Source: Cyanophora paradoxa CCMP329 (lineage: Eukaryota > Plantae > Glaucophyta). From it: a DNA stretch of 64,000 bases. This document shows, piece by piece, positions 12,226 through 59,300 of this stretch. The notes beneath the pieces were generated by a model, which saw only the letters and a program-made list of their open reading frames with translations, ran no database searches and had not been told where the DNA came from. The position numbers and the translations under genes are program-made. The stretch is from positions 124,001 through 188,000 of the forward strand of contig QPMI01000572.1 in the NCBI GenBank assembly GCA_004431415.1, written 5' to 3'. Position 1 is the stretch's first letter. Every line of letters begins with the position of its first letter.

Positions 12226-15200
12226 CTAGGGTCCCGAAGCGGAGGCTGCAGCCGCAGCGGAGACCATCAGGGGGTCCTCGCCCTTGGCCGCCCCCGCCTC
12301 CTCGGCGGCCGCCCAGGGCCGCAGCGCGATCTCAACGGGGCCGGCGCCCGCAGCCGGGGTCTCGAGCGCCGCCTCGCCCCCTTCCGCCCCCGACTCGTGG
12401 GCGCCCTTTTCGAGGAGCACGGCGCGCAGCTCCGGCGAGCAGCTCGTCCTGCCGTCGATCTGCCGCAGACGGTTTGATCTGGCATCACCGACAGCAGATC
12501 TAGATCTAGAGGACGTGCGCTTGTATATTAGCAGATGTCTAGATCTATCTATAAATACACGCACGAGGCAGCCCTCGAAGATCTCGTGCATGGCCTCCGA
12601 GATGCGGCGCGCGGGGTACAGCACCGGGAGCGGCCCCACGGGGTTCGTCCGCAGGGCGGACACCTCCACGTCCCACACGTACGCGTACCGGTGCGCCCCC
12701 GCCGCAACGCGGAGGCGCTCACCCTGCAGAAAGAAAGAAGATGAGCAAGCAAGGAAGGCGAGATCCGTGGAAGAAGGAGCGAAGAAGAAGTAATCGAGGC
12801 TCGACTAGACGGCTCGCTAACCTCGGTAAATCTACTTTACTACCCATAAAGAAAATCAGTGGAAGAGGGAGCGCGAAATCCTCACCCCGTGAATCAGGCG
12901 GGCGCAGGAGAGCTCGGGCCAGTCGGAGTACTGCGAGGCGAAGACGGCAGCCTCGCAGCCGACCTCCAGGTCCATCAGGACGAGCAGAGTTTTGCGCCTC
13001 CCGGCTCTCTTGCCCCACTGCTTGTACCGCGAACGCCTCAGCAAAATGTAGCGGGAGTGCGCTCGGCCAGCCTGCCGCGGGGTTGTAAGATTTCGAAGGC
13101 CATGATCGTGACCGGCGCCAATCCAGAAGCCGGACCTCATCGAGGACGAGATCGGCTTCGGGATCGCGAAGTGCTTTCCTATCCCCATCATCACGATCAA
13201 CTTTAGCGGATTCAAGAAAGTTTGCCGCGGAGTATTTCCAGTCAATTCGCTTGAGGACTTTCTTTGTGCTTGCATTTCGGGTCCACAGCTGGGGGACAGC
13301 GAGCGGTTTTTCTCCCACTACGGGCCGAGGTTTCTGAAGTTCTGGGAGGTCCGGGCTGAAGCACAGCTGCTCTTCTCCGTTCTATGAATGCTTGTGAGAA
13401 GCGAACAGATCTAGATGCACACGGAGGTGAAGTATAGAGACGTGCGCATGCCTGACCAGGGAAGGATGCAAGCACCACCATGTCAGTGCGACTGTCACTT
13501 GGCGACTTCTCTCCAACACCGCAAATGACGGCTTCTCGTATCGGTTTCCCCCCGAATACTTCGGATCCGCATATCACGTTGACGATCGCCCGCGAGGCCT
13601 CCTGTTCGAAAGCTTGAGCGCGAGCGATCGCGAGTAATCGACTGCAGCTCCGGTAGCTTAAGTTACCAATAACACAGCAGTTCCAAATTTGGTGTCCTTA
13701 TACATGTCTCGGTCCCTTGCAGAATGGAGATGTGTGAAGCGTTGTTGTTCGAAAAACTTGTGAAGTGATTCGCTCTCTAGGAGCACTCCCAATGATTCCC
13801 CATTCTGAAGATTCCAGATTTCCAGCCCCCTCTGGGTGGGCATGATGATTCTTGCGCCATCCTGGACGCTCGAAATCAGTCGACGTCGTGCGCGTGCGTT
13901 TTGAACCGCTGCTTGCAAAAATTGTACATGTGCATGCGCACCGCCGAAACCGTCATGCATTGATGACGTGCGTGTAGGAGCGTCCGAGAGATATTACTGC
14001 TAGTGCACCACTCGTCGGATTTCGAATCCAAATTCGTAAGTGCAAGCTTCCAAACGTCGCCTGCAGCTTCGTGGCGCAGGGTAATAACCCTGCATCCCTG
14101 CAGAATGGACATAACTAATTATAGCGGTTGCTCGGGTATGCGCAGAACGCTCCCGACGCACGTTCGCGTCAACTGCGCACAGGCAGTCTGCATCCACGTC
14201 GTCGAGACAGCGACCGGTGGAGAAATCCCACACACTCGCTCTCGACTCCGTACCGAATCGGAGTTGGAGGCCGTCCTACATATATACACGGACAACATCA
14301 TGATCAGTGAAGGTTTTGGTTTTCGCAAACGGTTTTGCAAGCGCTGCATTAGAAGGTGTACCTTGGATAAACGCAGCACACGGAGTGCGTTCCCGTGAAA
14401 GCCGCGTCCGACAGGGCGTAGCTGACCGGAAGCTATCGACCAGCCTCGTAGCTCCTTCGCACTAGTTGAGACGACGGATGCGTTTCCCTGCATCATTAGC
14501 ATGAGTCTATGATAATAAGCTGCTACGATATAATTTCAAATAGCCCTACCGGGAGAAAAAGTACTCCCTGTGGGCTCTGGGTTCCTTCCCACCCCACAAA
14601 CCGCTGTGTCTCCAATCCCGAAGCGAGATCCCACACGCTTAGGCAGCCGTCGGCAACGCTGGCAGTGACGGCTCGCGAGCCGTCCTTTTGCATAGACAAG
14701 TCTAAGCTTAAGCACGCGAAAGCAATCAACATACGGGGATCGATATCGGAACGCACTTCAGAGAAGTCAAAGAGGCGACTGTTCAAACGTGCATCTTCTA
14801 CCACAATCCGGCCCACGAGCGCCAAACGGTTCACGTCCCAAAGTGTTAGAACTCCATCATAATCACTAGAATGTCTGTTCACGTGGACATCGACGAGCAA
14901 TGCAAGGCTTCCATCCTGGTCGGTTTCGAGATGAGAACATGGTCGAAAAGCATATACTCGAAGCTCAGCCTGACCTTGCTTAGCCTGAGTGATCGATTGA
15001 TCGATTTGGAATTAGAATCGGCGAAAACGGGGACTTTGTGCTCCCCCCTCTTCGACACTTGCAGCAGGTCGTCAAGTATCTCAAGATCGTATATGTGAAT
15101 GCTCGAGCTCTCCATGTCTGAATTTTTGAGTCTCCATTCCGATGCTAAAAGGCGTTGGCAGTCCTGGAAGGAGTCATATGCATGATCAACATCAGGCAAC

Positions 15201-18200
15201 AGACAGTGGTAAGAGACGGCACCTCCGAAACTGTCATTTGCATAATCGTGTCAGCACCATTGTAGATTGCATTGTAGATTTGAAGTGTGATTGTGTTACC
15301 AACACGGTAAGTCTGGAGAAGACTCTTCTGATTGAGGTCCCAAAGCATCAGAAGCGATCCGGATGTAGCCAGTGCCCGGGATCCATCCTGCATGCGCAGA
15401 GAATGCAGCTTAAACAAAATTCCCAACAGCATTAGCTTCCACACTTTGCAGAACTCACTGGCGTAATCTGCGCGCTTTGTAGGTCTAAAACATGTTTTTT
15501 GTAATCAATTTCAGCCGTCTTTTGTTGTTTATCGATATCCAGAACTCTGAGCATATCGTCGACGAAGATTGCACGGGACTCGTTCTGCATAAAGTTGTGT
15601 GTCATACATCGTCATTTCGTGCCAAAAGGCGAAAGGGACAATACCTGCGACACCGCCAGCAGGCCAAGCATCGACGTCCGTACGAATTCGATATGCCTAA
15701 ATCTTGAATCTCGCCACTCCATAACCTTCTTCTTGCCGCCGGAATCCACCTGGATCTCCCACAATTCATACGTGTATAAACATGCGACTTTCTCGTCTTC
15801 TCCTTCGAATCCAATCTTTTGTTCTTCACTATCCCAATTGCGATATAAAAAATGATTACGTTGTCGACATCGCGCTGTAATAATCAAAATTCTTCTTCCG
15901 TCCTGCATTCGTATATAAAATCAGAGCAGCTTCGACCGCACAATTTGAAGTCGTCGGTGCGTACGGAGAGGCGTGCGACGCCCTTGACAAAGGTCTTGGG
16001 GTGGGACGTGCACCAGAGGGCCGGAGTGGCGATCACAGCGCAGCCATTCAGCTTGGCGCCTCGCAGATCAGCCCCCGCGAGGTTGGCCTCCTGCAGTCCG
16101 CATCCAGTCAGATCAGCGCCCCGCAAGTCCGCCCCAGCCGCCTCCAGCCGCTGCAGATCCGCCCCGGGCATTCTCACGCCCCGCAAATCGCTACCGGCAA
16201 AACTGTACCCCGCTGCGAAGCGCCTGTCAGGTTCTGGTGAAATTCAATCGATTTTCGAACGACTGCTAGGCACCACGATTAAGAATCGTCATCGCATTCG
16301 CCGAAGCGATCAGATCCTGCTTGGCCGCCCTCGGGTCGCGGCTCTGATCCAGGAGCCCAAGCAGTTTCTGCGCAATCGAATGGGCTGGCGCGTGAGCTGA
16401 GAAGCGCTAGCGCTTGAGCTTGTGTGTGCACCGTGCAGTACAATTTATCGCCGCGGCAGCATTCGGCAAGAAATTCCAGAATCTTTGGCTCTCCCGTCAA
16501 AAGTCTGAAATAATGGCAATGAAGACCGAAGATCAAATTTTACAAGTACGGATCGGAGAACGGATCGAATAAGATTGACTTACGTCTTATGGATCAGACC
16601 AGCGCCTGCCGCGGACCAGAAGCTTGCACGTCGCTGACGGCGGACCGAGCCGACGGCAAGCGCGCTCCGAGCAATAGCCTGACAACCATGCCAGTGCGTG
16701 AGCGGTGCACGCGTAACGAGTGCTCAGAGCTCGAGTTGGGCACCTTTTCGAACATCTCCTCGGCAACGAAGTACTCAAGCAGCGTCTGCGTTTACGTGAC
16801 TGTGTAAGCAGCACGAATGATCATGTGTGTCATGCGAATGATCAGCGACACAGCGTACCTTGTGGAGGAACCGAACATGAACAGCTCGAGGCGCGCTAGC
16901 TATAGCCTCGCGATCGTCTCGCCCGCCCTCAGAGGCCCGCGGCTGCCTGCCCGCCGGTGCAGCCTCGGAGATGTGGAGCGGGCAGTGGTCCCTGATGAAG
17001 ACCTCCATGGGGCTGTCCTGGCTCTGCATCAGGTCGATGCACGCCTTCAGCGGGTCTCTGCAGTCGGACTGCTCTCCGCCCTGCTTCGCCCCATCCTCGG
17101 CCAGCACTGCAGCTGCAGCTGCGTAGCGCGGCTTGCGATCGGCACCCTTGGGACGCTGCAATGGGGAGGCAAACTCTGAAATTGAAGCCTGCAATGTTTT
17201 CAATTGCGAGCAAGTTCGAGCAAGCAAGCAGGCAAAAGCAGCTGCAGAGGTTTGAAGCACCTCAAACATAGCAGTAGCCAAGTCCCTGCAAAAGCTGCGC
17301 CCGTACGTCTCGAACTCTTGTTTGTCCCACCCGCTCAGATCTGCAGGCACGCAACTAAACGTGGGAGAGGGCGGCGCAAGCTTATTAATGTAGGCGCATT
17401 CGAAGTTTCCGAGCTCACCGATGCTGAGCTGGGCGCCCTTGTTCCTGACCCGGTCCCACTGTCGCCCGAACCACCCCTCGACGAACGCGTCGTAGAGCTC
17501 GCGGATCGTGAGAAGCGACGTGCACGTGGACGCGTCGATTTCGGCCTTCGAGCTTTCTCTGCGCACGTATATAAATGCAGTCCCCATCAGCGATTTCCGA
17601 TTCACCAACACAGACCTCTGAGAGACGAGCTTCGGCAGCGTGCGGGCGACCATGCTGCCAGCGAAGAATTAGACCGAACTGCTCCAGAAGAATAGGGCGA
17701 GAGGGATTGGGTTGCGCGCTTCAGTGTGAAAGGGTTCTCGATGAGTGCGAGTGTCCCTGGAATGCGCTTGATGTGCGAGAGGTACTCATCAGCTGTCCAG
17801 TTGCAGCTGCGTTCCCGCAACTCCGCAGGCAGCGCCACGAACTGCTTGAGATAATCTTCCACCTGCCAGCAGTGGTCGCGATTAGCGGCTTCAATTCGCG
17901 TTGAAAGCGAGCCAGTTCATTTGAGAGGGCGCAAATGAACCTGTTCAGAGTTGAAGGGGTGCATGCAGACGTGGTCCAGGGGCTCCAGCGCGCCGCTGGG
18001 GTCGCTCGGTGCGAAGAGTTCAGCGTAGCCCCTCTGAGCCGCAAGGAGCGAGCTGCGGCAGGTCACGATGACCGCCGACACCCAGTCGACGAGCTCGTTG
18101 TCGGGCCAGAGGCGCGGCGGCGGCGCATCGCGGGATTCCAGTTCGTCGTACGCATCCAAAAGAAGCACCAGTCCGCGACTGCGCGCATCCGTGACTGGGC

Positions 18201-21200
18201 GCGTCTACGGTTGGCAGCAATGCTTATACGTAAATGGTGCACCTGTCACGGATCTTTGTGAGAGTCGCTTCGGGGACGGACAATGCTCGCGCTGCCGCAG
18301 CGCGCAGACCGCACGCCACAGTCTCTCTGCCGAGTCGCGGGAGCCGGAGCAGGCACGTCACTGGCAGGCGCTGGTCGCCCCGCGGCTGCCGACCGTGCGT
18401 GCGCCGCCACTGCTCGCACGCAAGGCGATGCAGGAAGACAAGGAACGTCGACTTGCTGGATCCGGGCTCGCCCGCGACGAGCAGCGCCCGCGGCGCGCCT
18501 TCGGTCGCTCCGGGCAGCGTGCGGGCGAGGAAGGCCGTCGTGTATGAGAGAATGTCAACGACGTTTCGGAGCTCGGGATCGGTCGTGGCCTTCGGCGGCA
18601 CGTACAGCGCGATGCCGTCGCGCAGGTCGCGTTTGGCGAGCTCCTGCTCTCCGTACTGCGCGCCGGTGAGTGGACGAGATGCGTTCAGGCAGACTCGAGC
18701 TCACGGAGTGAAGGGCGGAGCGGATGACAGTCTCGTTCGGGTCACGGACGAGGCGTGTCACAGCCGTTCTGAGCAGCTCCGACGACGCTTTCGGTGCGTT
18801 CAACCTCAAGCACGCTGATCTCTTGAGCGTGCGTTTCGGCTTGAAACCCGCAGCTTTGAGATCCTTCTCGTTGTCAGTCAAGCGATGGTCTAGATCTCAA
18901 ACAGCAAGAAATCAATTGGACCAGGGTGGTATGCACCTCGATTGACGCCCCGAGGAGCGATGTAGTGGCCTTCAACGCCTCGCCAGCGAAGGGGTCGTCC
19001 TTTTGCGCGAGCTGCTCCAGTCGCTTTGTTGCCGCCTCCGTCGCCTGCCCTCCAACCTCGGACGCTGCGATGCTCGCGAGCGCCTGCACCGCGGCCGTTG
19101 CCGATGCGATGGCTGCCTTGCTCGCAGCCTTCTTCACTTGCGGGGCGGCCGCCGCTGCCAGTGCCGCGTCCGCCAGCGCTCTGGCTACATCGACAGCCGC
19201 AAGCGCCGCCTTCGCGTCGCCACCGAGGGCCTCCACAGCCTGCGCAGGCATTGCGGTCGGGTTGCATGCGGTCGGAGAAATGGAGAAAGAAGAGCTATGC
19301 GAACCGACAAGAGGGCCGCGCAGACGGCGGCGACGAGCTTCGGATGCGCTACGGCGGCCGACGCGCCGCCCATTGCCTCCAGAGCCATCTGCAGCTCCTC
19401 AAGGTGACCCCCCTCCGCAAGCGCCGCAAGCAGCCGCGCCGGACGGTACCTGCACGCGGTCAGATACAAAATACGTTCCGAAATGCTAGCCACGAGGTCC
19501 ACGGCGCACCAGCACTTCTTTCCCTGCGGTGATCCGGCACCTACCAGGCGGCCGAGGTCGGCCCAGAGCTCTTGCACGACAGCCTTGACTCCGAGGTCGC
19601 CGCTCAGAGCGTCCTGCGGGCCTGTTAAAAGCGGCAGCGGCCATAGGATATAATTATATAAAGCACCTTGACAAAGACGGCCAAGTCAATAAGCGTTATC
19701 GCTCCGAAGCTGCTGATGCCTTCCATCACCGTCCGCCCCGCGCTGTACAGCTTTGCGACGATCCGCCCTACGGAACGTCAGCGAGAAGGATGAACTAATG
19801 AAGCTCATGATCAGCTGGGACGCACCAGCCGCCTTTACGCGAGTGAACGCGTCCTGCAGCGGGTCGTAGCTCGAGCGCGCGGCCGCGAGCGCCTGCCGCG
19901 CGACACTCGCCGCCACCTCCGCGCGCCACCAGCCGCAGCCCTCGAAGGCCCTGAGCGACGCCTCCAGCTCCCGCACCGTCCCCTCGTAATCCAGCCGCCC
20001 CGCCCCATCCGCCTCCTGCTCGTCCTCTTCTGCGCCCGGTAGCTCATGATCAGCGTCTCGTGTGGGATCCGGAGTTCAAGCCGCGAACGCACCGGCAGCA
20101 AACGCGGCGCCGTCGCTCTCCGAGTCGAACGCGGCAAGCACCGCCGGCACAAGCTGCAGCGCCGCGAGCGCGTCAACGTCTCCAGGCGCAAGCTTCGGGC
20201 TCAGATCCTTCAGCTGCGCGTAAAGACCAGGCGCAAATTAAATTCGAAAAAGACGAAAACACGTCACATCACTCGCCTGCCGCAAGCAAAAAGCGACGAG
20301 GCGGGACCGTTGCGTCGAGGTCAGCGTCCCCCGCGGCAGCCGCCCGAGCACGTCGACCAGCGCCCCGATCCGAGTCGTAGGAATCGCTTCCAGCACTGTG
20401 CCGTCCCGCAGGCGCAGCAGGACTTCCAGCAGCTGCGCACGCGTGAGACGAGAAAGTCGAGCAGCTGGAGGGAGATCTACGCACACGGGAGCAGAGCTCC
20501 GGGTCGCCCGAGCGGACGACGGCGCATGCCTCCGAGATCTCCTCCGGCCGGTGCCGCTCGCGCTCGCCGAACGCGTCCAGGGCTGCGTCCAGATCAGCCA
20601 AGACCAGCTGGTCATGAGGGACGGGAAGGAGAGTACTCGCACCGTTGAAGCACGCCTCCTGCGCCTCCGCGAGGGCGTCGTCGACGTCGCCCGTGTAGAT
20701 CTCGTTCAGGAGCGGCACTTGCGCCGCGCGCCTCGCGGCCTCCGAGGCGGGTCCCTGCCGCTTCGCCTCCCGCAGCAGGGCGCACAGCCCCGCGAGCTGC
20801 CCGACCGACGAGGCCGTCTCCAGCGACTGGAGATAACGGAGCTCCTCCAGCTCCGCGGCGAACGCCGGCGCGCGCGCGCTCGACGCACTGGGCGCCGGCG
20901 ATGCCGCGGCAGCTGCAGCTGCAGCGCTAGCTGTGACAGCTGCGGGAGGCTTCGATGCCGCCGGCCGCGGGGACGTCGCCGGCGCGGGTGGGGGCTGCTG
21001 CTGCTGCTGGCCATGTGCGGAGGGATGCGCTGGGACCGATCGCGATGTAGACTGGAGCTGGGGCGTCGACGGTGCGCATGCTTGCGCAGGCGTCGTACGC
21101 GTCGCCGCTGCTGGAGCGCTAGCGAGGCTGATCGCTAAGTCCGATGGATCCGCCACCGCGTCGACGTCCTTGGAACTGGCGCCGGCGTGCGCGTCCTGGG

Positions 21201-21387
21201 CCTGCGTCGGCGGGCGCGCGCTCGAGTGCGTCGGCGACGTCGACCGCGGCTGGGTGGTCGCTCCCGCCGCCGCGGCCGCGGGCTTCTGTGCGGCCTGACT
21301 GCTACCTCGCGCTGGAGGCGACTGCAGCTGCTTCGCTGCCGCCTTGCGGCGGTCGCGGGGGCCTTTCTTGCAGCACGCGCTTCCCAT
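12226..21387 (-). CDS. NLR-like STAND protein: acylation motif, helical/ARM-like region, NACHT, pentapeptide repeats, WD40 repeats
   Basis: Starts MGSACCKK (21387). Pre-NACHT YVPPKAT; Walker A-like LLVAGEPGSSKSTF (about 18445-18485); Walker B LVLLLDAYDEL; VIVTCR; NPFTL; ELYDAFVEGWF; RFLHK|TLLEYF; GEPKILEFLAE; ASANAMTILNRAGYSFAGSDLRGVRMPGADL...ADLRGADLTGCGLQEANLAGADLRGAKL. Diverged WD40 exons at about 12600-15960. Terminal cap FEGCL|IDGRTSCSPELRAVLLEKGA. TAG at 12226-12228. Confidence 0.8.
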
Positions 21388-42561: not shown

Positions 42562-45500
42562 CTACGCGGCGGGGCGCAGCGGGCGGCCGGCATGTACCCC
42601 ATCGGCTCCTCCCCGCGCAGCAGCCGCTCGACCGCCCCGGCCCCGCCCGCCGCGCGAAGGCCCCGGCGTCCCACTCGCCCCCTCCGGCCCCGCCGCGGGC
42701 GCCTCGCCCCGCGCCGCCCGCGGCGGGTACCCCATCTGGCGGGCGCGGCGCTGCTCCGGGGGCGGCTCGGGGGGGGCGAAGCCGGGCAGGAGGCGGGCCG
42801 GGGGCAGGTGCAGGTCGATGAGGACGCCGGCGGTCGGGAGCCACGAGGCCAGCGCCGCCAGGCAGAGCCTGCGCCACCGCCGCCGTCGGACGTTGGAAAC
42901 CCGCGGGCTGCCGGGACGGGAGGCACCCCCCGGCCAAGCCGACCTCTGCCCTCCCCGCTAGACCCTCCAGGCCCCTCGAGCCTCCCTTGTGATCTCTGAT
43001 CCCTGAGCCCTCTGGAGGGGAGGGCGCGGCGCACGCGTCGAGGCCGTCGACGCGGCGGGCGGCGGGGTCGGCGCCCCTCGACAGCAGGAAGCGGCAGATC
43101 GCCTCCCGCCCGTTGTACGCCCCGTACCTGCGCCCCAGAGGCGGCCGGAGTGGTCGGGAACGGAGCTGGGCGCAGGGGGGGGGGGGGGGGGGAGGGGGTA
43201 CATGAGCGCCGTGGTGCCGTCCACGCGCCGCGCGTTGACCCGCGCCTGCGGTGGCGGCGCGCTCCGGTCAGCTCAGCTCCCCGCGGGTTCCCCGCCCGCT
43301 CAACCACACTCCCTGTACACCCCCCAGCCCCCCCCTTCCCCCCCCTTCCCCCCCCCCCCCCCCCCCTCCCACCTTGCAGGTGTCGACGAGCCAGCGGACG
43401 ATGCGCTCGTGCCCCCCCTGCACCCTGCGGGGGGGGGGGGGAGTTGGGAGGGGGGTAGAGAGGAGGGGGGAAGGGAAGGGGAGGGGCCGGGCGCGGAAGG
43501 GGAAGGGGCGGTTTGGTTCTCGCAGCGCGGCTCATTCTCCCGAAGCGGTCTAGTGGGGAGGGGGCGCGAGCGGGGCCCCCGGGCGCACGAGGCCATGAGG
43601 GGCGTCTCCCCCGCCTGCGAAGGAAGCTCGGCTGAGCGCAGCGCGACAAGCCGAGCAGAGCCGAGCGAGGGGCGGGGCGGGGGCGGGGGCGGGGCGGGCC
43701 TCGCCGTCGGCGGCCTCCTCGACGTTGAGGCCGCACTCCACCGCGTACTTCGCCACCTGCGGGGGCGCGGGGCGCGTCAGCGGCGAGTCAGGGGCGAGCA
43801 GCGGCGCCCCGCGAGGCCGCCCCAGGGGCCCCGAGAGGGCCCGGGCGGGGGGGTACCGGGAAGTGGCCGTACTGGACGGCCCAGATGAAGGTGAGGCCCG
43901 TCTTCGTGCGCGCGTGCGGGTTCGCCCCTGCCGCCCCCGCCCCTCAGAGGGGAGGCAAGGCGCGGGGCGGGATGGGGGGCGGGGAGGCGGGGGGCGGGGA
44001 CCGCGGGCGACGAGGAGGCGGGCGACCTCGAGGCGGCCCCGGAACGCCGCGTGGTGCAGCTGCGCGGGGCGCTCAGATCAGATCAGACAAGAGCGCCGGC
44101 CGCCGCTCAGAGCGCGGGCGGGCGCCGTCCCCTCTCTAGCCTTTCGGGAGCGCGGGCGGGGGCGCTGGGTGGGGCGCACGGGGGCGAATCCCTCGTCGTC
44201 GGCGGCGTCGAGGTCCGCGCCCCCGTCGCACAGCGCCCGCACCGCCTGCGCGCGCCCCCTCAGCGCCGGCGGGGGCGGGGGGCGCGGGGGCGGGCTGGGC
44301 GCCCGCGCGCCTCGATGTGGCCCTCCCGCGCCGCGTGGATGAGCGCCGTGCACCGCTCCGCTGCGCCCCGGCCCATCGGCGCGAGCGCTGCGAGCCCCGC
44401 AGGGGCCTCAGGGAGAAAGGGCGCGCACAGTCTCTCGCGTTCGGGTCGGCCCCCTGCGCCCGCCCGCGCGTGAGCAAAGGCGCGGGGCGGGGGGTACGGA
44501 GCGCGGAGGAGGGCGCGGGGCACCTGCCGCAGGAGCGCCGCCACGACGCTCGCCTCGCCCATCCCGGCCGCCCTGGGGTACCCGGTTCGAGGACGATGGG
44601 GGGGGGGGGGGGGGAAAGGGGGGGGCGGGGGTACGCGCATCATGAGGGTGGAGAGGCCCTGGCCGGCGGCGCGCACCATCGCCAGCATCGCCTGGTCGTC
44701 CCTCTCCGGCTCCGGCTCCGGCTCGCGCGGCGGCGGCGGCGGAGGGGGAGGTTGAGGGGCGGCAGCTCGCGGGGCCTCGGCGGGGCGCCGGCGCCGGCGG
44801 CTTCCGCCGGCTGCGGCGCGGCGGGGGCGGAGGATGCGGAGGAGAGGGCGGGCCCGCCCGGGCCGCAGATCCGGGTGCAGGGGGGAGGAAGAGGAAGGGG
44901 CGGGAGGGGAGGAGGAGGAGGAGGTCTCTTGGGGTGCGGCGGGAGCGGGGGGCGGGGAGGCGCGGGCGGCGGCCTGCTGTCCGTGCCGCCTCAGGGCAAA
45001 GCGGGCGGGGGTGGGAGGAGGAAGGGGGGTACCTGGGGGCTGGGCGCGGCCCTCTCGCGCCGGACGGAGGCCCACGCGGCGGCCGCGGCGACGGCCGCCC
45101 CCGCGGGGTTCGCGCCCCTCGCCCCGGCCTCCTGGAGGGGGCGCGCGTCGGCAGACGTCGAAAGCATCGCGGCGGGCGGCGAAGGAGGGGGGGCCAAGCG
45201 GCAGCACCCGCAGGCGCCTGACGACGGGCACGCGGCTCATGACCATCGCGAGCTGCACGGCGCTCACGCCCTCCGTGTCTGCGGGGGGGTGCGCCGTCAG
45301 AGGGGCGCCCGGCCGCCCCGCAGGGGTACAGGAAAACTCGCCCCGGGCGTCGACGTCGGCGCCGCATCGGATGAGGAGGTCCACGATCCTGCGGCCGCCC
45401 GGCGCCTCAGCCGGCCCGGGACGTGGGGGGCGGGGGGAGGAGCCCGCTCACCTGAGGTGGCCCTCCTTGGCGGCGAGGTGAAGGGCCCTCGTGCCTGCAC

Positions 45501-48500
45501 GCCCGAGTCAGACCCAGAGTAAAAAGAGCAAGAAGAACTAGAGGAGCGCGGGGCGGACCGCGGGGGCTGGCGGCGTTGGGGTCGACGCCGGGCCCGCCCT
45601 CCTCGGTCCCCAGGAGCCACGCGGCGACCTCGAGCCGGTCGTTCGCCGCCGCGTACCTGCGAGGCACGGGGCGCGTCGGGCCGAGATCCAGCCCAAGCTG
45701 CTCTCGAATAGGAGGTCGGACCAGAGGCAGGACCAGCCGTCGTGGTCCACGGCGTTGGGGTCCGCACCCCGCCCCACCAGCAGCTGCCGGAGAGGCTAAG
45801 AAGAGGGGGCGCCGGGGGCGGGGCGGGCGGGCCTTGACGGCGGGGAGGTTGCCGCGCTGGCAGGCGACCATGAGCGCCGTGCGCCCGTCCTTGGCCGTGA
45901 TCCCGAGGCCCGCGTCCTCGCCCTGCCACGGGAGAAGATGGGCGAGGGCGAGGGCGAGGGCGAGGGGCGGGGCCGGGGCGCACGCGCTGGGCGCGGATGT
46001 CGAGGATGGCCTCCAGCGCTTCCGCCGTCTCCCGCGGCTGCCGCCCCGCCCCGCCCCGCCCGCGGTGAGACGCCGCGCGGCGCCCGCCTCTCTAGGACGC
46101 TACTAGCTGCTAGAACGGGCCGCGCCTGGGCGGGGCCGGGGGCGGGGCCGGGGGCGGGGGCGACTCGGACCTGGCAGGCGTAGAAGGCGGCGTCCCAGCC
46201 GTCCTTGTCCAGGGCCCCCAGCTCCGCCCCCGCCTGCCCCGAGGTCAGCTCGGCCAGCTGACGGGGCGGGGCGGGGCGGGGCGGGCCTCGACGAGGGCGC
46301 GGACAATGGCGCCCGAGCCCGAGACCGACCCCTGCGCGGGGAGGCGGGGAGGCGGGGCGCGTTAGGCCAGCTCGGAGACGGGATAGGGGAGAAGGCGGGG
46401 GGTGGGCGGGCCTGCATGAGGACGGTGGTGCCGTTCTTGCGGGCGGCGCGGGGGTCGGCGCCCCGCTCGATCAGCATCGCTACCATCCCCAACAGGTTCT
46501 CCTGCGCACGCGTGCACACGCAGACCGGCGTTCAGCGGCCGGCTGCGCGGCTGCGCAGCTCGGGGCCGGGGCGCGAAAGGTAGTGGGGAGCTCTAGGCAA
46601 GCCCGTAGGAGCGGGCGGTGTCCCCTCCAGCCTCTAGCCTCTAGCCTCCAGCCTCTAGCCCTCTAGCGGGGCGCCACCTGGGCGGCGATCATGAGGGCGG
46701 TGAGGCCGGCCGAGGTCCGCGCGTCCACCTCCGCCCCGAACCGCTCCACCAGCGCCCGCGCCGCCTGCCCGGGAGCTCAGCCAGATCAGACTGACTGACT
46801 GATCGGGGGGCGCCGGCCCGGACCTCGGTGCGGCCCTTCTGGCAGGCGATCATGAGCGGGGTGACGCCCTCGTTGGTGCGCGCCGCGAGGTCCGCCCCCG
46901 CCTGCCCAAGGCGAGGCTCGCGAGGCTCGGGGGGGCGGGCGGGGTCGGGGCGGGCGGACGTCGACGAGGGCGCGGAGGACGTCGAGGTTGCCCTCCTGCA
47001 CCGCGAAGCAGTGCGGCCGCCACCCGTCTGCAGGCCCCACAGACGGGGCGAGAGCTGAGAGGGAGGGAGCGGCGGGGGCTGGCGCTCGGGCGGACCGACG
47101 TTGGGGAGGTTGGCGTCGGCGCCGCGCTCGAGGAGGAGCCGCACCATCGCCCCCCGCCCCTGCACCGCCGCGATCTGCTCGCCCCGCCTCGCTCAGGCCT
47201 CGTCTTGCTCGCTCTTCTACGGTTTCTCCCAAGGCGCACAGCGAGGGGGCAGAGGCCCTTGCCCGTCTGCGCGTTGACGTCCGCCCCGCACTCCTCCACC
47301 AGGAACCGCGCCGCCTGCGGCGAGGGAAGTCAGAAGGGGGAAAGGAAGAGGAGGGAAGGGGAAGGAAGGGCGGGCCTGGAGGCTGCCGGTCTGGGCGGCG
47401 GCCATGAGCGGGGTGAGGCCGTTGGCGGCGCGCGCGCTCAGCGCCTCGGGGCCCATCGCATCCCGCACCCGCCGCAGCACCGCGACCCTGCGACGAAAGC
47501 GTCGAGAAGAGGAGGAGGTCAGCTTCCGTCAGCTCCCTCCCAGTCAGCCTCCGCTGCGCGCACGCGTCGCGGCGGGCGGCGAAGAAGGCGGCGGTCCAGC
47601 CGTCGCAGTCGGCGAGCGCGGGGTCCGCCCCCGCCCGCAGCAGCTCCAGCGCCACCTGGGCCCGGGGGGAGGCCGGGGTGAGACCCCGCGCCCTGCACCT
47701 AGGAAGAAAGATCCATCGCTATCTGAAGGGCGAGGGGTCACCTCCTCGGCGCCCTCGTCGCAGGTCACCATCAGCGGCGACACCCCCTTCCTGCTCGGCG
47801 GAGAAGAGGTGAGGGGGCCGCTGGGCGGAGAACCGGATCCAGAGGGGGGGCGCACCGGGAGCAGATGTCGGGGTTCCCGCCCCCGCGGAGGAGCGCCCGC
47901 GTCGCCCCCGCGCTCCCCACCCGCTGCGCGCCCCCGCCCCTCAGAGGTCGGCTCGGGGGCTCAGGCGGGGCCGGCCGGGGCGCACCGCGGCGAAGTAAAG
48001 GGCGGTCCACCCGTCCTGCGGCGCCCCGCGCCCGTCAGCCGGCGGGGCCCAGACTAGAGCCGATAGGCTAACGCTAGGTGCGCGGTGCGGTGCGCGGCGC
48101 GGCGCGCGGCGGGCTCGCGCGCGCTCGCCTTGTCGACGGCGTTGGGGTCGGCCCCGTGCTCCAGCAGCAGCGCGATGAGCGACGTGAAGCCCTACGGGAA
48201 CGCGGGTGAGGAGGCGCGGGCGGGGCGGGGAGGCCTAAGGAAAGGCGAGGGGAGGGGCGCCTTCTCGGCCGCCAGCATGATCGGGCGGATGCCCTGCGGC
48301 TCACGCGTCAGGCGAGGCGAGGGGGGGAGGAGAAGGGGAGGGGGGTACCTTGGAGTCGGCGACGTGGACGAGCTCCGGGGAGTGCGCGCAGAGGGCCCGG
48401 GCCGCCCCCGCCTGGCCCCGCTGGCACGCGAAGAGCTGTCCGGCACGCGGCGTGAGCAAGGGAGGGGCGGAGGGGCGGGGCGGGGCACCAGCGGGGTCCA

Positions 48501-51500
48501 GCCGTCCGAGTCCTTGAGGGTGGGGCAGGCGCCCCGCGCGAGGAGCGCCGCCACGCAGGCCGTCTGGCCCTCCCGCGCCCCCCACGAGAGCGCCGTCCAC
48601 CCTGCACAGGAGGCGGGTGAGAAGGCGAGAAGCGGCGTGGCTAGGAGAGACAGCGCGCCCTCGCGGTCCTGGTCGTCGGGGCGGGCGCCGGCGTCGAGCA
48701 GCGCCCGCACCGCCTCCTCGCTCCCGTGCGCCGCGAACATCTGAGGCCGCGAGCGAGCGAGCGTGAGGCGAGGGCGGCCCCCCACTCGGCTTGAGGGCCT
48801 CTGCTAGGCTCTGCCGAGCTCGGAGGGGCGGGGGCGGGGGCCGGGGCCGGGCGGGGGGCGGACGAGGGCGGTGCGGCCCTCGCGGGAGGCGTCGTTGGGG
48901 TCGGCCCCCAGCGCCACCAGCAGCGCCGCCATCGCCCTGCCTTGGGCTCAGCAGGGGAGGGGGCGAGGGGCAAGCGAAGCGAGCGAGCGGACCCTCGGGC
49001 CTGGAAGCAGGCGCGGATGAGGGCCGACCACCCGTCCGAGTCCTTCGCCGCCACGTCCGCGCCCCGCGCCACCAGGTACTCTGGCGAGGGCCTCGGCGGG
49101 GGCGGGCGGGGGCAGCGGGGGCGGGGGCGGGCCGGCGAGGGGCCCGAAGCCGGCGTCGATGGCAGCCATCAGCGGCGTCACCTGCGCCCCCGCGCGCCCC
49201 GGCGCCTCAGAAGAAGCGAATCTCAGAGGCCGATCGATTTGTCACTGCACGCGCCCCGTCGCGCTCGCCGCGGGCGTTGACGTCAGCGCCCCCGCCCAGC
49301 CGCCTCGCGCTCCTCGCCCGTCTTCTCTCCTCCTCCTCTTCGTTTCCGACCCGCCCGTCCTCGCCGCCGCCCGCCTCCACCTTCGTCCCTGCCTCCTCTG
49401 CCTCGGCACCCGCCTCCTCCTCCTCCCCCGCCTCCGGCTCGCCCTCGACGAGGAGGCGGGCGACCTCGACGGCCCCGCAGGCCCCAACCAGCTCGGACAC
49501 CCCGTGCAGCGCCGTCCGCCCTGCAGCGCCGCCCGCGTGCAGTTGGGCGCGGAGGAGGGCGCAGAGAAAGAAAGGGCCGCACCGGCGGCGGCGGGGTGCG
49601 GGCGGTCGAGCGGGGGGCTCTCGGGGTGCCTCAGGATGGCCCGCAGGATGGCCATGTCCCCTGCCAGGGCCGCCCGCCGCCGTAAGAGAAAGTGGGAAGG
49701 ACGCGACGGGGCGAAGGAAGCACCGCGGGCGGCGGCGAAGTCGACGCAGGTGCGGCCGCCCTTGTCGGCGGCCCCGAGGCGGGCGCCCCAGCGCAGCAGC
49801 AGCCGCATCATCTGCACGCTCCCGTTCTGCACCGCGTACCTGGAGGGGGCGTCAGGGGAAGGGGGAAGGGCCAAGGAGGAGGCGATCGGCGAGGAGGCGC
49901 GCATGAGCGGGGTGGTGCCGTCGGCCTCGGCGGCGTTCGGGTCGGCGCCGTGGTGGAGCAGCAGGTTCGCCACGGCGACCTGGGCGAAGGCGGGCGGGGG
50001 TGAGCGGGGCGCCCGAGGCCCGAGGGGAGGGCGGCGCGCCTTGTTGTTGAAGGCGGCGGAGAGGAGCGGCGTCCGCTGGAACGAGCACGCCGCCTCCACC
50101 TGCGGCGGGGGTGGGGGAGGGAAGAGAGAGCTGGGGGAGGGCGCGGGGGCCGCGGCGCACGCTGGCGCGCATGCGGAGGAGGACGCGGACGACGGCGGTG
50201 TAGCCCCAGCAGCACGCGCAGTTCAGCGGGCTCCACCTGGCCGCGAGGGGGAGGAGAAAGGCACGGGTCAGAGGATTCAAACGGGGGCGGGGGGGGGGGA
50301 GACGAGAGCGCGCACCCCGACTCGTCGCAGGCGTCGACGTCGGCGCCGATGGAGGCGAGGAACTCGGCCGCCTGCCCCCGCCCGCCGTCAGAGGGCGGGA
50401 TGGAAACAGGGCGGGAGAGGAGGGCGGGCGGGCCTGGGCGTGGCCGTTGACGGCGGCCATGAGGAGCGGGGTCTCCTGCTCGCCGGTGCGGGCGGCGAGC
50501 GAGGCGCCCCGCGCCGCCAGCGCCCGCGCCACCTCCACGCACCCGTACCGCGCCGCCCACACCAGCGGCGTGTACCCGTAGAAGTCGGACCTGGGGGGAG
50601 GCACAGGCTAAGGCGACGTGCGACTCGGGCGGGGGAGGGCGGGGCGCACCCGCCCTCGACAGGGCAGCCGAGGCGGGAGAGGAGGCGGACGAGGTGGGCG
50701 TGGCCCCACGCCGCCGCCCGCGACAGCGGCGACATGTCCTGCCACACCCACGCGCGCGCGGAGTCGCAAGAAGCAGAAGCAGGAGAGAAGGAAGGACAGC
50801 GGGAAGAGGGGGCGCACGGTGACGGACTTGGCGTTGAGGTCGGCGCCGCAGCGCGCGTGCAGGAAGCGCACCCGCGCCGCGTCCCCCTCGTTCACCGCCC
50901 GCCCCAGCGCGATCTGCCCGCACTAAGCGAAGGGGGGGGGGGGGGGGGCGGGAGGGGGGTTACCTGGACGAGCTCGGGGGGCAGGCCGGCGTAGGGAACG
51001 GCCCCCCTCTGGAGCAGGACCGTGAGGGCCATCTGCGGGGTACGCTGAGCGAGCGCCGCCCCCCATCGGATGGGGCAGAGGGGGTACGGACGTCGTCGTC
51101 GAGGCGGGCGCCCTCGAGGGAGGCGCCCTCGGCGTGGGCGCGGGGGGGGCACTCCCAGGCCGCCCGCGCCGCCAGGCGGCCGGCCGGCCCCTCCGCCAGC
51201 TCCCAGAGGGCGACGCCGTGGTCCGACCCGCCCGTCGCCAGCCGCAGCCCGGGCCCCGGCTGCGCGGCGCGCGCCTCAGAAGGAGGCGGCAGTAGTAGTG
51301 GAAGGGAGGGCGGCGCGCCAGGAAGCAGAGGGAGGAGACGACGTTCTCGTGGGTCGAGAAGCACGCCGCCAGGCGCCCCCGCCGCGGCGGCGCCGGCGCC
51401 TCCCTGCGTGCGCCCCGCCCACGCCCTCAGCGGGTGGACGGAAGAGAGGTGGGGGACAGGGAGAAAGGGCGGGCCAGGAGGCGGCGCGGTCGACGAGCTC

Positions 51501-54500
51501 CGCGGCGAGCGCCATTGCCGCCTCCGCCTCCGCCGCCTCCTCCGCCTCCACCCCTTCCTCCACCACCCCTTCATCCCCCTCCTCTTCCTCCTCCTCGGCG
51601 TCGGCCTCGAGGTCCCACACGTGAATCCAGGACCTGCGCGCGCTCCCAGTGAGAACAGGGCGCAGGAGAAGAAGAAGGACGCTTTGAGGGCGGGTTGCGG
51701 GCCACTGGGAGCCGGTGGCGGCGTAGCGGCCGCAGGGGCTCAGCGCGAGGCACGTCGGCTGGCTGCTGCTCCCCGAGACCGCCAGCGGGCGCGGCCCGGG
51801 GCCGCTTTCGTCCGGGTCCTCCGGGACCGGCGGGTCCGGGAAGGGGTCCCCGGGGCCCGGGATCTCGAGGGGCTCCCACGCGCAGGCCGCCTCCGAGGCG
51901 TCCCACAGGGAGACCGCCCCGTCCTCGCCGGCCGAGCAGAGCTGAGCGGGGGCGCCGGGCGGCCCCGGGCGGAAAGCGACGCAGCGGACCGAGTTGGCGT
52001 GGAGGCCGACGCGGGCGGCGCGGGCGGCGAGGGGCCCCTCGGGGGGCACGGGCCCCGGGGCGAGCTCGAGCAGCCAGAGGCCGCCGCCCGTGTCGGCGGC
52101 GGCGAGGCGGAGGCCGTCCGAAGAGACGGCGAGGGCGGCGCCCCAGGTCTCCCCGCCCGCCCCGCCGGCACCGGCACGCGCCGCCGCGGGCCCGGCAGCG
52201 GCAGCGGGCCGCCCCCGCCGCCCCCGCCGGCCTGGGGCAGGCCCAGATGAAGAGCTCGCCCTCGGCGCAGGCGGCGGCGAGGGCGGCGCGCCCGGCGGCG
52301 ACCTCGACGACGTGCGAGGGAAGGCCTGCGTCCCGCCAGGCCGCCTCCGCCCCTCGGGCGAGGCGGAGGAAGAGGCGGGGGCGGGGAAGAGGGCGACCGA
52401 GCGGTCCTCGCCCCCGCAGAAGAGCCCCGCGCCGTCGGGCGCCCACGCGACGCTCAGGCAGCCGGCCGCCGAGCCGAGCGAGCCCGGCGGGTCCCGCGGG
52501 TTGCCCCGAGCTTCCGCGGCGCGTCCCAGCGCGCCCCCGTCGCCTTCCACGCCGCCGAGGGGCCCGCCCCGCCCGTCCCCGCCGGCCAGAGGCGCACGGA
52601 GCCCTCCGCCCCCGCCGAAGCGACCAGCGCGCCGTCCGGCGAGGCCGCCACCTGCGGCGCGCGCGCGCGTTCGATTCCGGGCGGGGGCGCTTCGAAGTTC
52701 GGGCTCCCAAGGGGCGCACCTGGCGGACGGGGCACTCGTGGCAGCCGATCGGCCCGCCCCAGCGCCGCTGCGCCATCGCCTCCGGCAGGTCCCACATCTG
52801 CGAACCCCTCAGCGGCGCCGGAGGGCCGTACCCCGTCCCAACTCGATCCCCCGTACCTTGACGCGGCTCTCGTCGGTGCCGATGGCGAGGAAGGGTACCC
52901 CCGGGCGGGCCCCGAAGGCGAGGCACCGCAGCCGCTTGCCCCCCGCGTGCAGCGGCGGGGCCGCGTCGCCCGCCTCCCCGTCCTCCTGCGCGCGGCTCAG
53001 GTGAACCGGGGGGGTAGATGTAGGAAAGCGTACCCCGAGGGAGCGGAAGCGGACGCAGCCGTCGTCGCCGGCGGAGGCGAGGAGCGGCGGGCGGCCCTCG
53101 GCGGGGGGCGGCAGGAGGCAGAGCGCCGTCGCCGCCCCCGCCGCGTGCTCGCCCACCACCCGCACCTGCGCGCGCTATCTTTAGAACCTCTTCGAAGAAG
53201 GAAGCTGTACCCCCACAACTGACCAGGGAGCGGGAGGCGGAGCTCCAGAGGCGGAGGCGGCCGTCGCCGTAGGCGGCGACGAGGGGCGCCTCGCGGCCGC
53301 CGCCGGCGAAGCGGAGGGCGTTGAGGGGGCCCCAGGGCGCCTCCCCGCCCCGCGCCGGCAGCGACGCCAGGAACGACGCGTTCCGCCCGTCCCACAGGAA
53401 CGCCCGCCCGTCCTGGACCCGAGTTAGGGAGGGGCCGGGGGGCCGGGGGCAGGCGGGGGCGCGCGCGCCTTGGAGCCGGAGGCGAGGAGGGCGCCGTCGG
53501 GGGCCCAGGCGAGGCAGAGGGCGTCCTCAGCGTGGCGGAAGCGCTCCTGGGGCGCGGGCGAGTCGCCCTGGAGCCCCCGCGCGACGTCGAGCAGCCTCAC
53601 GGCGCGCCCCGCCGCCGCCGCCAGCAGCGGCGCCCCCGTCGGCGTGTGCGGCGAGAAGGCCACCGCCGCCACGTCCGAGGGCAGCGCGTGGCTGAAGAGC
53701 TCCTTCGGGGCCGGGCAGGGCGTGCCGGGCGCGCCGGCCGCTGCCACGGCGTCCACGCGGTAGACCTTGACGGTCCTGGCGAGGGGGCGCCTGAGGGCCG
53801 GCGCGGGCCGGGCGGGGCGCTGAGCGCGGCGTGCGGGCGCACTTCTTCGACGCGGCGACGAGCACGACGCTGCCGTCAGCCATGGGCGGCGAGAAGGAGA
53901 CGGAGGCGACCTTGCCGGGCCTGCCGGCGCGGCGGCCGCGGTCAGCGGCGCCGCGCGGCCGCCCCGCCGCTCCGAGCCGCGCACCAGACGGCCGTCCGCA
54001 TCTCCCCCGTCGTGCAGTTCCATATGAAGACGCCTGCGGGCGGTTCAGGCGACTGGCGCGCCGGCTGCGGGGCGCGCCTGGCCGTACCGCCGAAGTGCCC
54101 GCCGGCGAGCAGGGTCGTCGGGGACGGCGACGAGTCAACGCGATGCATGTCGAACGCGCTCACGCTCCCGGGTGTCTCGAACTCGGCGCGCAGGCCCCAG
54201 CGCGCGCCGGAGAGATTGGCGCCTTCGAGCTGAGCGCCGCTGAGGTTCACGCGCTGCAGGATGCATCGTGAGAGGTCTGCGCCCCTCAGGTCGCAGCTGC
54301 GCGGGCGAGCGGCGTCAGGCTTCACGGGTGCATCGGGTGGTCCGCTCACCCCTGCAGGCGCGCTCCGGTGAGATCGGCGCCGCTGAGGCGGACTCCCGAG
54401 AGGTCACAGCCGGCGAGCGGAACGCCGTCGCGCGCGATCGACTCTGCGGCGGCCCTGGCGGCCTGGAGCGCGACCTCCGATTGCTCGTGCTTGCTCCACC

Positions 54501-54546
54501 GCACGAGCGCGACGAGCGGCTGTTGGCCATTCGCGCCTCCGCTCAT
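42562..54546 (-). CDS. Pentapeptide-repeat, WD40 and long ankyrin-repeat fusion protein (no NACHT domain)
   Basis: ATG at 54546: MSGGANGQQPLVALVRWSK...AARAAAESIARDGVPLAGCDLSGVRLSGADLTGARLQG-CDLRGADLS. WD40 repeats (WAPDGALLASGS, SVRCVAFRP, SAGEDGAVSLWD, TGGSDHGVALWE). Cap AEGASLEGARLDDD|MALTVLLQRGA is joined in frame via phase-0 introns to more than 20 ankyrin repeats (GYTPLVWAARYG, GWTALSWGAREG, GVTPLMIACQKG, GRTALMVACQRG). 3' end uncertain. Confidence 0.7.
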
Positions 54547-56388: not shown

Positions 56389-59300
56389 CTAACGCGCGGC
56401 GGGGGCGCCCCGGTGCCAGGGCGTCCAGTCCCCGTGGAATTGCTGTGTACAAGCGTCGAGTGTTAGAGCGCGCAGGGCAGGAGCGGCCCGGCCCGTGGCG
56501 CGGGCCGCCGGGCGGGGCGGGGGCGCACGTAGGGCGAGGGGTCCCTCAGGGGGCAGACCGCCAGGGGCCCCGCCTCCAGCCTCTGCCGCCCCGCGCCGCG
56601 CCCCGGATCCGATAAGAGGCGCGGCAGAGACGCGCGCGGCTGAGGAACCGTTTGCGTACCCCGGCGTCGAAGAAGGCGAGCGAGGTGCGCGGCTCGGGGC
56701 GGGCCGCGAAGAGCAGGACGACGAGGTACCCCTCCGCCTCCCCCGTGCGGCCCGGCCGGGGTACGAAGTTCGGCTCGCCCACGAATGTGTGCGGCGGGGC
56801 GCGCCACTCGGAGTCCACCCGCCCCGCCGCCCAGTCGACCTGAGAGATCGCGTACCCCCTCAGAACTTCTGCCCTGGGCGGGCGCCAGCGCCGGCTGGGG
56901 CCCGTACCCGGCAGATGCGGACGAAGGGGAAGGGCTCGCCGTCCCTCTCGCTGGCGGGGTACCAGAGGTACCGGTAGCTCCGACCCTGCGGCGCCCGAAG
57001 CCGCCGTCGGCCGCCCCGAGCGCAGGCCGGCCCCCGCCGAGGGGGGTACGCGCACGTCAAAGGCGGGGTTGATGCAGGGGAAGTCGGGGTTGCGGCGGTC
57101 CACGTCCACAGACGACGCCGTACCCTGGCGAGGGCCGTCGGAAGGGGGGGAGAAAGGTTGTACCGCCCCGCAACAGGGGTACTCTTGCCGGACCTTCTCC
57201 GTGTCGACGGTGTAGCGGCGGAGGGCGCTCGCCATCATCCCGCGCCGGTGGACGAAGTCGAACCTGCGTACCCCCCTCAGGAGGCGCCGGCGGCGTTCCG
57301 GCGGTCCGGGGAGAAAGCGGCGCGGGGTACCCGAAATCGAAGTCGCTGGCGACGCACGCGTCGAGCACGATGCTGCGCACGCGGAGAGAGGAAAGGGGTA
57401 CGTGAGGTTTTAGGGTTCCTGCCTGGCGCTCCGCGCTGCCCCGCCCCTCTCTACTCCCCGCACCTGGGACCGTCCTCGTAGGCGTTGCAGAGGTGGAAGC
57501 TGCGCCCGGGCCCGCGCTCGGACCCTCCCCGGCTGGGCCTCGGACCGGAGGGGCGGGGTACGGGGGTACCCGAAGGCGGTGGGGACGGGGACCTCGAGGG
57601 GGCGCCGCCCCGCGCCGGCCTCCCGCGGCACCGCGTAGATCAGCGCCTGCCCCGCCCGGCGCCCCCCGGCGTTAGGCGCTCTCTCTGGAACAGAGCGGAG
57701 GGGCCGGCCGCTCGCGCCTTCTTGGTCTTGTCGACGCGGAGGGCCTGCGAGGAGGCTCTGAGAGGGGCAGACGGGGCGGCGCGGGGCGGGGCGGGGCGGC
57801 GGGCCTGGTTGATCGGGCGGGCGCCGGCGAGGGCGGCGGCGAGGGCCGGGAGCGAGACGCCCACGGGGCCCATGAAGAAGACGTAGTACTGCGCCGTATA
57901 CGTCCACATCAGCTCGGGTGGGGTGTACCCCTAAGCTCGCTTCCCCCTCCCCCGGGCGAACGTTCTCCGTGATCGTGAAGTCGTGAACGAATGACGAGAT
58001 CGGCATCTTGTGCACCTGGGCGGGGGTTACCAGACAGGTCGCGACCTAGAGTCTCGTACCCCGGGGTCCGGGGCCCGGGGTGCACGCGCGCTGACCTGCT
58101 TGGAGATGGCGTGCATGGTTCGGTCCATCTCGTAAATCACAAGCTTCCGCTCGGGGCCCGGCATCGCCCTGGGGGTACGGGGTAAACAAGAAGGGGAGAG
58201 GGAGAGGCTTGGAGATGGCATGGGGGGTACCCGAAGTTGACGAGGCGGTCCCTCCTGGTGTCGACCCTGCAGTGCGCCGAGAAGGCCTCTCTCTCCTGAC
58301 GGGGGGGCAGGGGGCGGGGGGCGGGGGTGGGGGGTACGGGTTCAGCAAGCGGGGGAGAAGGATGGAAGGATCAGCGTACCCCGATGGCACCGGAGAGGTC
58401 GTCCGGCCCGTGAGTCTCGAGGGTCGCGGGGTCGATCCGGTGCGGCCTGCCCCCTGCCCAATTCATTTAGCGGAGGGGGGGGAGGGGATGCGGTGGAGGG
58501 GTACCGCACCCTCCCAGAGGGCGTACAGGCTTCCGTTCCAGAGCACGACGTTCGTGTTCTAGGAATCGCTAGTTTAGCGGCCGGGGCGGGCCGGCGGCGA
58601 GGGGCCAAGAAGGGGAGCGGAAGGGGTACCGCGACGTTCTTGGGCCGGAAGTCGAAGGCGTTCCGAAGGACGCCCCCGGGCTTGAGTGTGCCGAACCCCC
58701 TGCGCTCGACGTCGGCGGGGCCGGCCGCGCACTGGAGGGGGGTACCGCAACGCCGACCTGTACATGACCTTCCCCGCCTCGCTCTCGACCCGGTACGCCT
58801 CCGTCTGCGGCGGCGAGGGTGAGATGCAGAAGGGCACGGAGGGAGAGAGTAGGAGAGCGGGCGCGCCTGCACGTATCTGCTGGAGAAGTGCACGCGGCCG
58901 CCGGCGACGCTGAAGCGCCGGATGAACCCGTGGCCTGCCCGGCCCCGGACCCTCGCGTTCGGATATCGATGGCGAGGCCGCGCGCGCCGCGGCGCACCGT
59001 CGAACGGATGAATCAACTGCCCGCCGATGCGCACCGATCCCGGGCCGTTCACGAACAGCGTGCCGACTGCGCGGCGCTCGAGGAAAGACGGCGCGAGCGC
59101 GCGGCGCCGCGCACCGATTTCCGGGGGCAGCGACCCCTCCACCTCGAGAAAGTAGCCTTCTTCCTCCTTCGCGTCTACGTCCCAAAGCGCTGCATAGTCG
59201 CCGCGGTCGAGCCCGTCTGCGCGCGCGCGTGAGCGCCGGACGCGTGCCCATGCGCCAAGCGTCGCAGCGCTTTCCCCGGGCGCGCGCACCGTCCGGAAAC

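Follow-up and report, generated by a model that had tools for sequence, protein, structure and literature searches.

In the glaucophyte alga Cyanophora paradoxa CCMP329, the gene tig00021179_g19246 is predicted to encode an acylated NACHT-pentapeptide-WD40 protein of the NLR-like (STAND) type, and its exon layout raises the question whether WD40 repeats are kept as interchangeable cassettes. An initial annotation of the DNA had proposed that any of these exons can be skipped, duplicated or swapped without a frameshift, giving a diversifiable immune sensor. The gene lies on the minus strand (12226..21387; 37 exons, 36 introns, about 2,222 codons) of the stretch analysed here, further called the window, which comprises 64,000 nucleotides of contig QPMI01000572.1 (positions 124,001 to 188,000). 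That annotation rightly recognized an NLR-like NACHT gene with one WD40 repeat per symmetric exon in one frame, and the sensor is variable as it supposed, but interchangeable cassettes left no sign at this locus: the exons follow a position-specific order, share no DNA similarity and give no skipping joint among the RNA joints listed. On balance we favour a propeller with a constrained fold and a fast-changing surface, whose fixed exon order would be inherited from ancestors with homogeneous repeats.

An exon from the NACHT region gave a 100% match to P0001, which is tig00021179_g19246.t1 of C. paradoxa in EukProt, and the 5' intron chain was obtained by mapping P0001 onto the window. This public model reads into intron 15903-15964 and stops there; it is truncated, and our analysis corrects it by extending the gene 3' through the WD40 tail. 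The gene is expressed. All 11 introns between 13602 and 15964 are GT-AG introns of phase 0 on the minus strand at the coordinates that the initial annotation had read from the DNA, and the ten exons between them, all multiples of three and free of stop codons, have the lengths and starting residues it had given. RNA contigs from four runs and three studies skip ten of these 11 introns exactly, and the region is spliced into the mRNA of the NACHT gene: contig X5-14 runs from the pentapeptide exon through WD exons 1-3, and X1-5 ties the pentapeptide exon to the exons upstream. The run is longer than 11, as introns 13382-13451 (GC-AG), 13072-13135 and 12724-12885 are likewise spliced in RNA contigs and intron 12460-12564 is implied by contig pieces that stop at 12459 in four runs. 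Altogether, 15 phase-0 introns at one shared WD40 position bound 14 repeat exons (Table 1), and 13 of the 15 are spliced in order in RNA. Intron 14685-14756 has a weak AAG acceptor and is absent among the 15 joints listed out of 26; one contig piece stops at its donor, and a contig of run X8 (14715-14914) continues through this donor, which probably reflects intron retention or pre-mRNA. No differing letters were seen across the RNA runs.

The 21 introns upstream in the same gene are of phase 0, 1 and 2 in 11, 5 and 5 cases, respectively, in contrast to the last 15 (Fisher p = 0.002; 0.52^15 = 6e-5). As a control we used a pentapeptide-WD40 gene elsewhere in the window, of which nine introns were read (phases 2,1,2,2,0,0,0,0,0) and in which the introns within the WD40 part fall at scattered repeat positions. 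Since phase 0 is common by itself (five of the nine control introns), it is the shared repeat position that constitutes the real signal. Each WD exon of tig00021179_g19246 begins at the a-b turn and codes for strands b, c and d and the next strand a, so that an exon does not equal a structural blade. In WD40 propellers the a-b turn lies on the bottom face, and the binding face at the top is made up of the b-c and d-a loops. What makes the long exons longer sits either before or after strand c.

Within this gene the exons are very unlike each other. Their amino-acid identity amounts to 21% on average and 38% at most, compared to 78% in paralog P0005, and their lengths range from 114 to 258 nt. 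With blastn no DNA similarity between exons was detected, and a repeat search across the tail DNA gave only short chance matches, so that a substrate for unequal crossover is lacking. Spare or inverted exons are absent from the window, in which each exon matches only itself, and the tail introns (59-162 nt) are too short to house spare exons. The order of the exons was assessed through z scores from an exon-by-unit comparison with the WD units of paralogs P0018 and P0019. Exons 2, 3, 4, 6, 7 and 8 each have the same-numbered P0018 unit as best match, the P0018 matrix averages z 8.4 on the diagonal vs 1.6 off it, and for units 1-7 none of the 5,040 possible orders scores better than the collinear one; exon 5, which scores higher with unit 3 than with unit 5, is the one clear off-diagonal case.

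To place this layout in its family, paralogs were compared as proteins from public models. Nine other matches of the NACHT-exon query that were looked up are paralogs of the same C. paradoxa genome, and a whole-core query added further paralogs and only a single weak protein from outside this genome (25% identity). In a tree of NACHT cores, this gene, P0002, P0004, P0018 and P0019 form a five-gene clade (Shimodaira-Hasegawa-like approximate likelihood ratio test, SH-aLRT, 100) of diverged members, nested inside paralogs with near-identical, HET-E-like repeats; a clade of the homogeneous-repeat genes alone is rejected by the approximately unbiased (AU) test (p 0.001). The homogeneous paralogs have 12-17 WD units in public models. 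Moreover, the models of P0021, P0012 and P0022 contain insertions resembling introns immediately ahead of the DG turn, mostly with Gln as last residue, which indirectly suggests that these paralogs share the intron site of this gene. P0012 and P0022 had been labelled as diverged by a lag-42 test, a label that was dropped because these insertions separate near-identical repeats. From the nesting of the diverged clade among homogeneous-repeat paralogs it would follow that the one-repeat-per-exon layout arose in those relatives and then froze in the clade of this gene. The simplest history would be tandem amplification of an exon-intron unit, concerted evolution of the HET-E kind (PMC1805685) and a single loss of homogenisation. 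Repeat exchange and change in repeat number, which the initial annotation had attributed to this gene, fit the homogeneous paralogs and not the gene itself. The public models of P0002, P0004, P0018 and P0019 all break off shortly after entering the WD40 tail or ahead of it, probably by the same annotation failure as that of tig00021179_g19246, and protein databases lack their tails.

The sensor has diverged far more than the remainder of the protein. Between P0018 and P0019, identity amounts to 87% in the arm and 90% in the core and pentapeptide part, vs 39% in units 1-2, where pairs of homogeneous paralogs whose cores are equally far apart have kept 73-81%. The drop, from 15-20 down to 4-10 identical positions per 20 residues, sets in directly behind the pentapeptide repeats, ahead of the first phase-0 intron. 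GC content at third codon positions (GC3) is 0.72-0.80 upstream, 0.45-0.68 in exons 1-12 and 0.85-0.96 in exons 13-15, with an intron GC of 0.48. Together, the 90% core vs 39% propeller identity and the fall in GC3 point to a fast-evolving sensor. Nonetheless, the reading frame is open over 788 codons despite many indels, and the anchors of strands b and c are retained in 12 exons. The diverged tail of P0018 was modelled as a seven-bladed WD40 propeller (predicted local distance difference test, pLDDT, 70; Foldseek E 1e-18) with the d-a and b-c loops as long, low-confidence segments, and a database search with this tail returned three generic WD40 proteins only. By extension from P0018, the only member of which the fold was modelled, the sensor of this gene is probably a double seven-bladed propeller.

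We propose that tandem amplification of one ancestral WD40 unit, together with the phase-0 intron at its a-b turn, gave rise to the array, and that unequal crossover and conversion would have kept the copies near-identical, as they still are in the sister paralogs. Homogenisation would have ceased once, in the clade of this gene, upon which the units may have dropped below the similarity that recombination requires, each gaining position-specific sequence while their order froze. Like plant highly variable NLRs, the propeller would now change by rapid substitution and in-frame loop indels, probably with positive selection favouring new binding. By analogy with STAND proteins, the product may act as a membrane-tethered switch that is closed by the double propeller and opened by a ligand, upon which the NACHT domain would oligomerise; a role in immunity and ligand sensing is likewise suggested by this analogy.

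Several points weigh against this proposal. The trees are quick searches without bootstrap, the second of which omits two long rows, and the group for the AU test was defined after inspection of the first tree. The intron sites of the paralogs were deduced via protein models. Colinearity leans mainly on one paralog, P0018, for units 1-8, and for exons 9-14 the truncated public models of the paralogs offer nothing to compare. The alignment used as input for the P0018 fold was rich in canonical WD40 rows, biasing the model to a propeller. Exons 11-12 are without recognisable WD motif, which would also be expected if, under relaxed selection, the layout is frozen and the sensor decays with its frame and rough fold kept, change being drift and not the gain of new specificities. 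The GC3 of exons 1-12 near the intron GC, its coincidence with the GC trough of the window and the shallow RNA contigs are in line with such decay. We consider it rather unlikely, as all 14 exons lack stops and frameshifts in spite of the indels, the strand anchors persist and several equally diverged paralogs retain position-specific motifs.

The identity of the tail is moreover flat, 38-39% at core identities of 63, 67 and 90%, and is fitted poorly by a simple rate model. This would fit a whole-tail exchange, in which the order of the repeats is fixed and paralogs trade complete propellers, or convert their 5' part, by recombination in the conserved pentapeptide exon, old sensors thereby being paired with new cores. 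Such a process would also account for the abrupt fall in identity directly behind the pentapeptide repeats. Whole-tail exchange nonetheless seems unlikely: unit 2 of both P0018 and P0019 has a long d-a insertion that is absent from this gene, in agreement with the core tree, and the break coincides with a protein domain boundary, as expected under selection too. Active skipping, duplication or swapping of the cassettes of this gene, by splicing or by DNA recombination, would always preserve the frame, and the homogeneous paralogs do differ in unit number. One X1 contig (13452-13572) continues from the end of exon 11 with eight letters, seven of which equal the start of exon 12, and returns to 13572, a junction that amounts to most of exon 11 being duplicated in frame (129 nt, 43 codons). 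It was seen in a single contig of a single run, is not bounded by splice sites and lies off the exon boundaries; it may be a library chimera. The units are collinear and position-specific, with neither exon-exon DNA homology nor spare exons, and the tail joints listed connect neighbours only, without exon skipping among the 15 of 26 joints that are listed, although rare forms drop out of such shallow contigs. We therefore regard cassette shuffling in this gene as very improbable. What was found is largely old duplication with congruent order, the outcome that the initial annotation itself had named as speaking against its proposal. More tentatively, one exon scaffold might serve two modes, with concerted, HET-E-like exchange in most members and, in the clade of this gene, a change to fixed order in which only the propeller is subject to a locally higher mutation rate or to strong diversifying selection, possibly with swaps of whole sensors.

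Judging by titles and term counts, no study devoted to these Cyanophora genes was found in the literature, and comparison with known systems is instructive. The HNWD/NWD NLRs HET-D and HET-E of Podospora anserina (PMC1805685, PMC13449251) likewise combine a NACHT domain with a C-terminal WD40 sensor, and the homogeneous Cyanophora paralogs resemble HET-E in high internal conservation and variation in unit number. The sister paralogs have repeats within the 70-100% identity that characterizes the HET-E type (PMC13449251), whereas this gene, with 21% identity, falls outside it and is of the low-conservation type; it further differs from HET-E in that each repeat has its own intron, in the presence of a pentapeptide linker and acylation motif, and in the absence of a HET domain. 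In Ectocarpus, the ROCO (type I leucine-rich repeat, LRR) and NB-ARC-TPR genes (PMC3341825, PMC11378527) are likewise candidate algal immune receptors with one repeat per symmetric exon, but have one fixed exon length, spare intronic copies and rearranged paralogs, in contrast to the variable lengths, lack of spares and kept order described here. Closer are the type II LRR exons of Ectocarpus, which have the same layout without sign of shuffling. The 90-bp-exon LRR genes of Tetrahymena, produced by unequal crossover (PMC6564038), similarly form an array of one-repeat exons with a single intron phase, but there it concerns LRRs, phase 2, an exact exon length and a highly variable exon number, compared to WD40, phase 0, variable length and a frozen order here. 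In plant highly variable NLRs (PMC11093987, PMC8226289) the sensor likewise outpaces the nucleotide-binding core by far in its evolution, although its repeats are not homogeneous; these are NB-ARC-LRR proteins defined by allelic diversity within a species, whereas our contrast is between paralogs, for which the 90% core vs 39% tail identity is suggestive of a similar status. A symmetric one-repeat-per-exon layout can thus be the fossil of past tandem amplification and is by itself no evidence of shuffling. Moreover, the family offers a case within one genome of a concertedly evolving WD40 sensor that leaves the recombining pool, with decay or a fast-evolving receptor of fixed order as outcome.

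Table 1. Features of tig00021179_g19246 in the window, in the order of transcription
Feature	Position	Strand	Remark
N-terminal start, Gly2/Cys5/Cys6	21370..21387	-	predicted myristoylation and palmitoylation signal, common to P0018 and P0019; putative function
Low-complexity linker and alanine/leucine-rich, probably helical arm, aa 7-712	18705..21369	-	
NACHT domain, aa 769-937	17839..18487	-	Pfam PF05729; Walker B intact
Pentapeptide-repeat exon, ends in first propeller strand	15965..16212	-	PF00805 E 2.9e-17; splice sites from RNA contigs
15 consecutive phase-0 introns (span), 59-162 nt	12460..15964	-	at a-b turn of WD40 repeat
WD exon 1, 86 aa	15645..15902	-	~30-aa insertion before strand c; weak match to P0018 unit 1
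WD exon 2, 42 aa	15459..15584	-	unit 2 of P0018 and P0019, z 8.5 and 7.8
WD exon 3, 55 aa	15223..15387	-	P0018 unit 3, z 10.3
WD exon 4, 63 aa	14975..15163	-	P0018 unit 4, z 9.8
WD exon 5, 53 aa	14757..14915	-	unit 5 z 4.8, unit 3 z 6.9
WD exon 6, 45 aa	14550..14684	-	P0018 unit 6, z 8.6
WD exon 7, 42 aa	14362..14487	-	P0018 unit 7, z 12.0
WD exon 8, 38 aa	14162..14275	-	start of P0018 unit 8, z 4.1
WD exon 9, 52 aa	13942..14097	-	strongly diverged
WD exon 10, 65 aa	13667..13861	-	
Exon 11, 50 aa	13452..13601	-	no WD motif; GC-AG intron next
Exon 12, 82 aa	13136..13381	-	no WD motif; absent from initial annotation
WD exon 13, 62 aa	12886..13071	-	absent from initial annotation
WD exon 14, 53 aa	12565..12723	-	includes start of family C-terminal cap
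Last exon	12226..12459	-	cap end, acidic tail, stop codon

Upstream of the propeller, the NACHT domain matches PF05729 with E 5.6e-5 and 23.5 bits, just below the curated cut-off of 26.7. In its Walker A motif (window 18450-18480) a Ser replaces the conserved Gly before the Lys, here as well as in most paralogs checked, and is therefore an old trait of the subfamily. A Pfam scan gave no match of any kind in aa 1-712, and since no effector domain is recognisable, signalling may need a partner. The WD tail was searched one exon at a time, and in these exon-by-exon scans no single WD exon matched the Pfam WD40 family; weak matches of single exons to BPS1, Acb1, MSG and TraP were rejected as far below cut-off. 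Exon 6 is the sole clearly canonical WD repeat (family hidden Markov model E 4e-9).

GC donors occur in three of the 36 introns (13382-13451, 17655-17719 and 20214-20276). The longest tail intron (162 nt) contains a short element (12791-12850) that also occurs in several other transcripts or loci, as judged from a spike in depth and dissimilar flanks in each of the four runs; it is single copy in the window and possibly a small dispersed repeat. The control gene (window 42562-54546) is a pentapeptide-WD40 gene that lacks a NACHT domain and has a long ankyrin array fused to it, and one of the nine introns read in it has a GC donor. Finally, the end of a minus-strand gene at 56390-58000 of the window resembles, by eye, a carotenoid-oxygenase-type protein.

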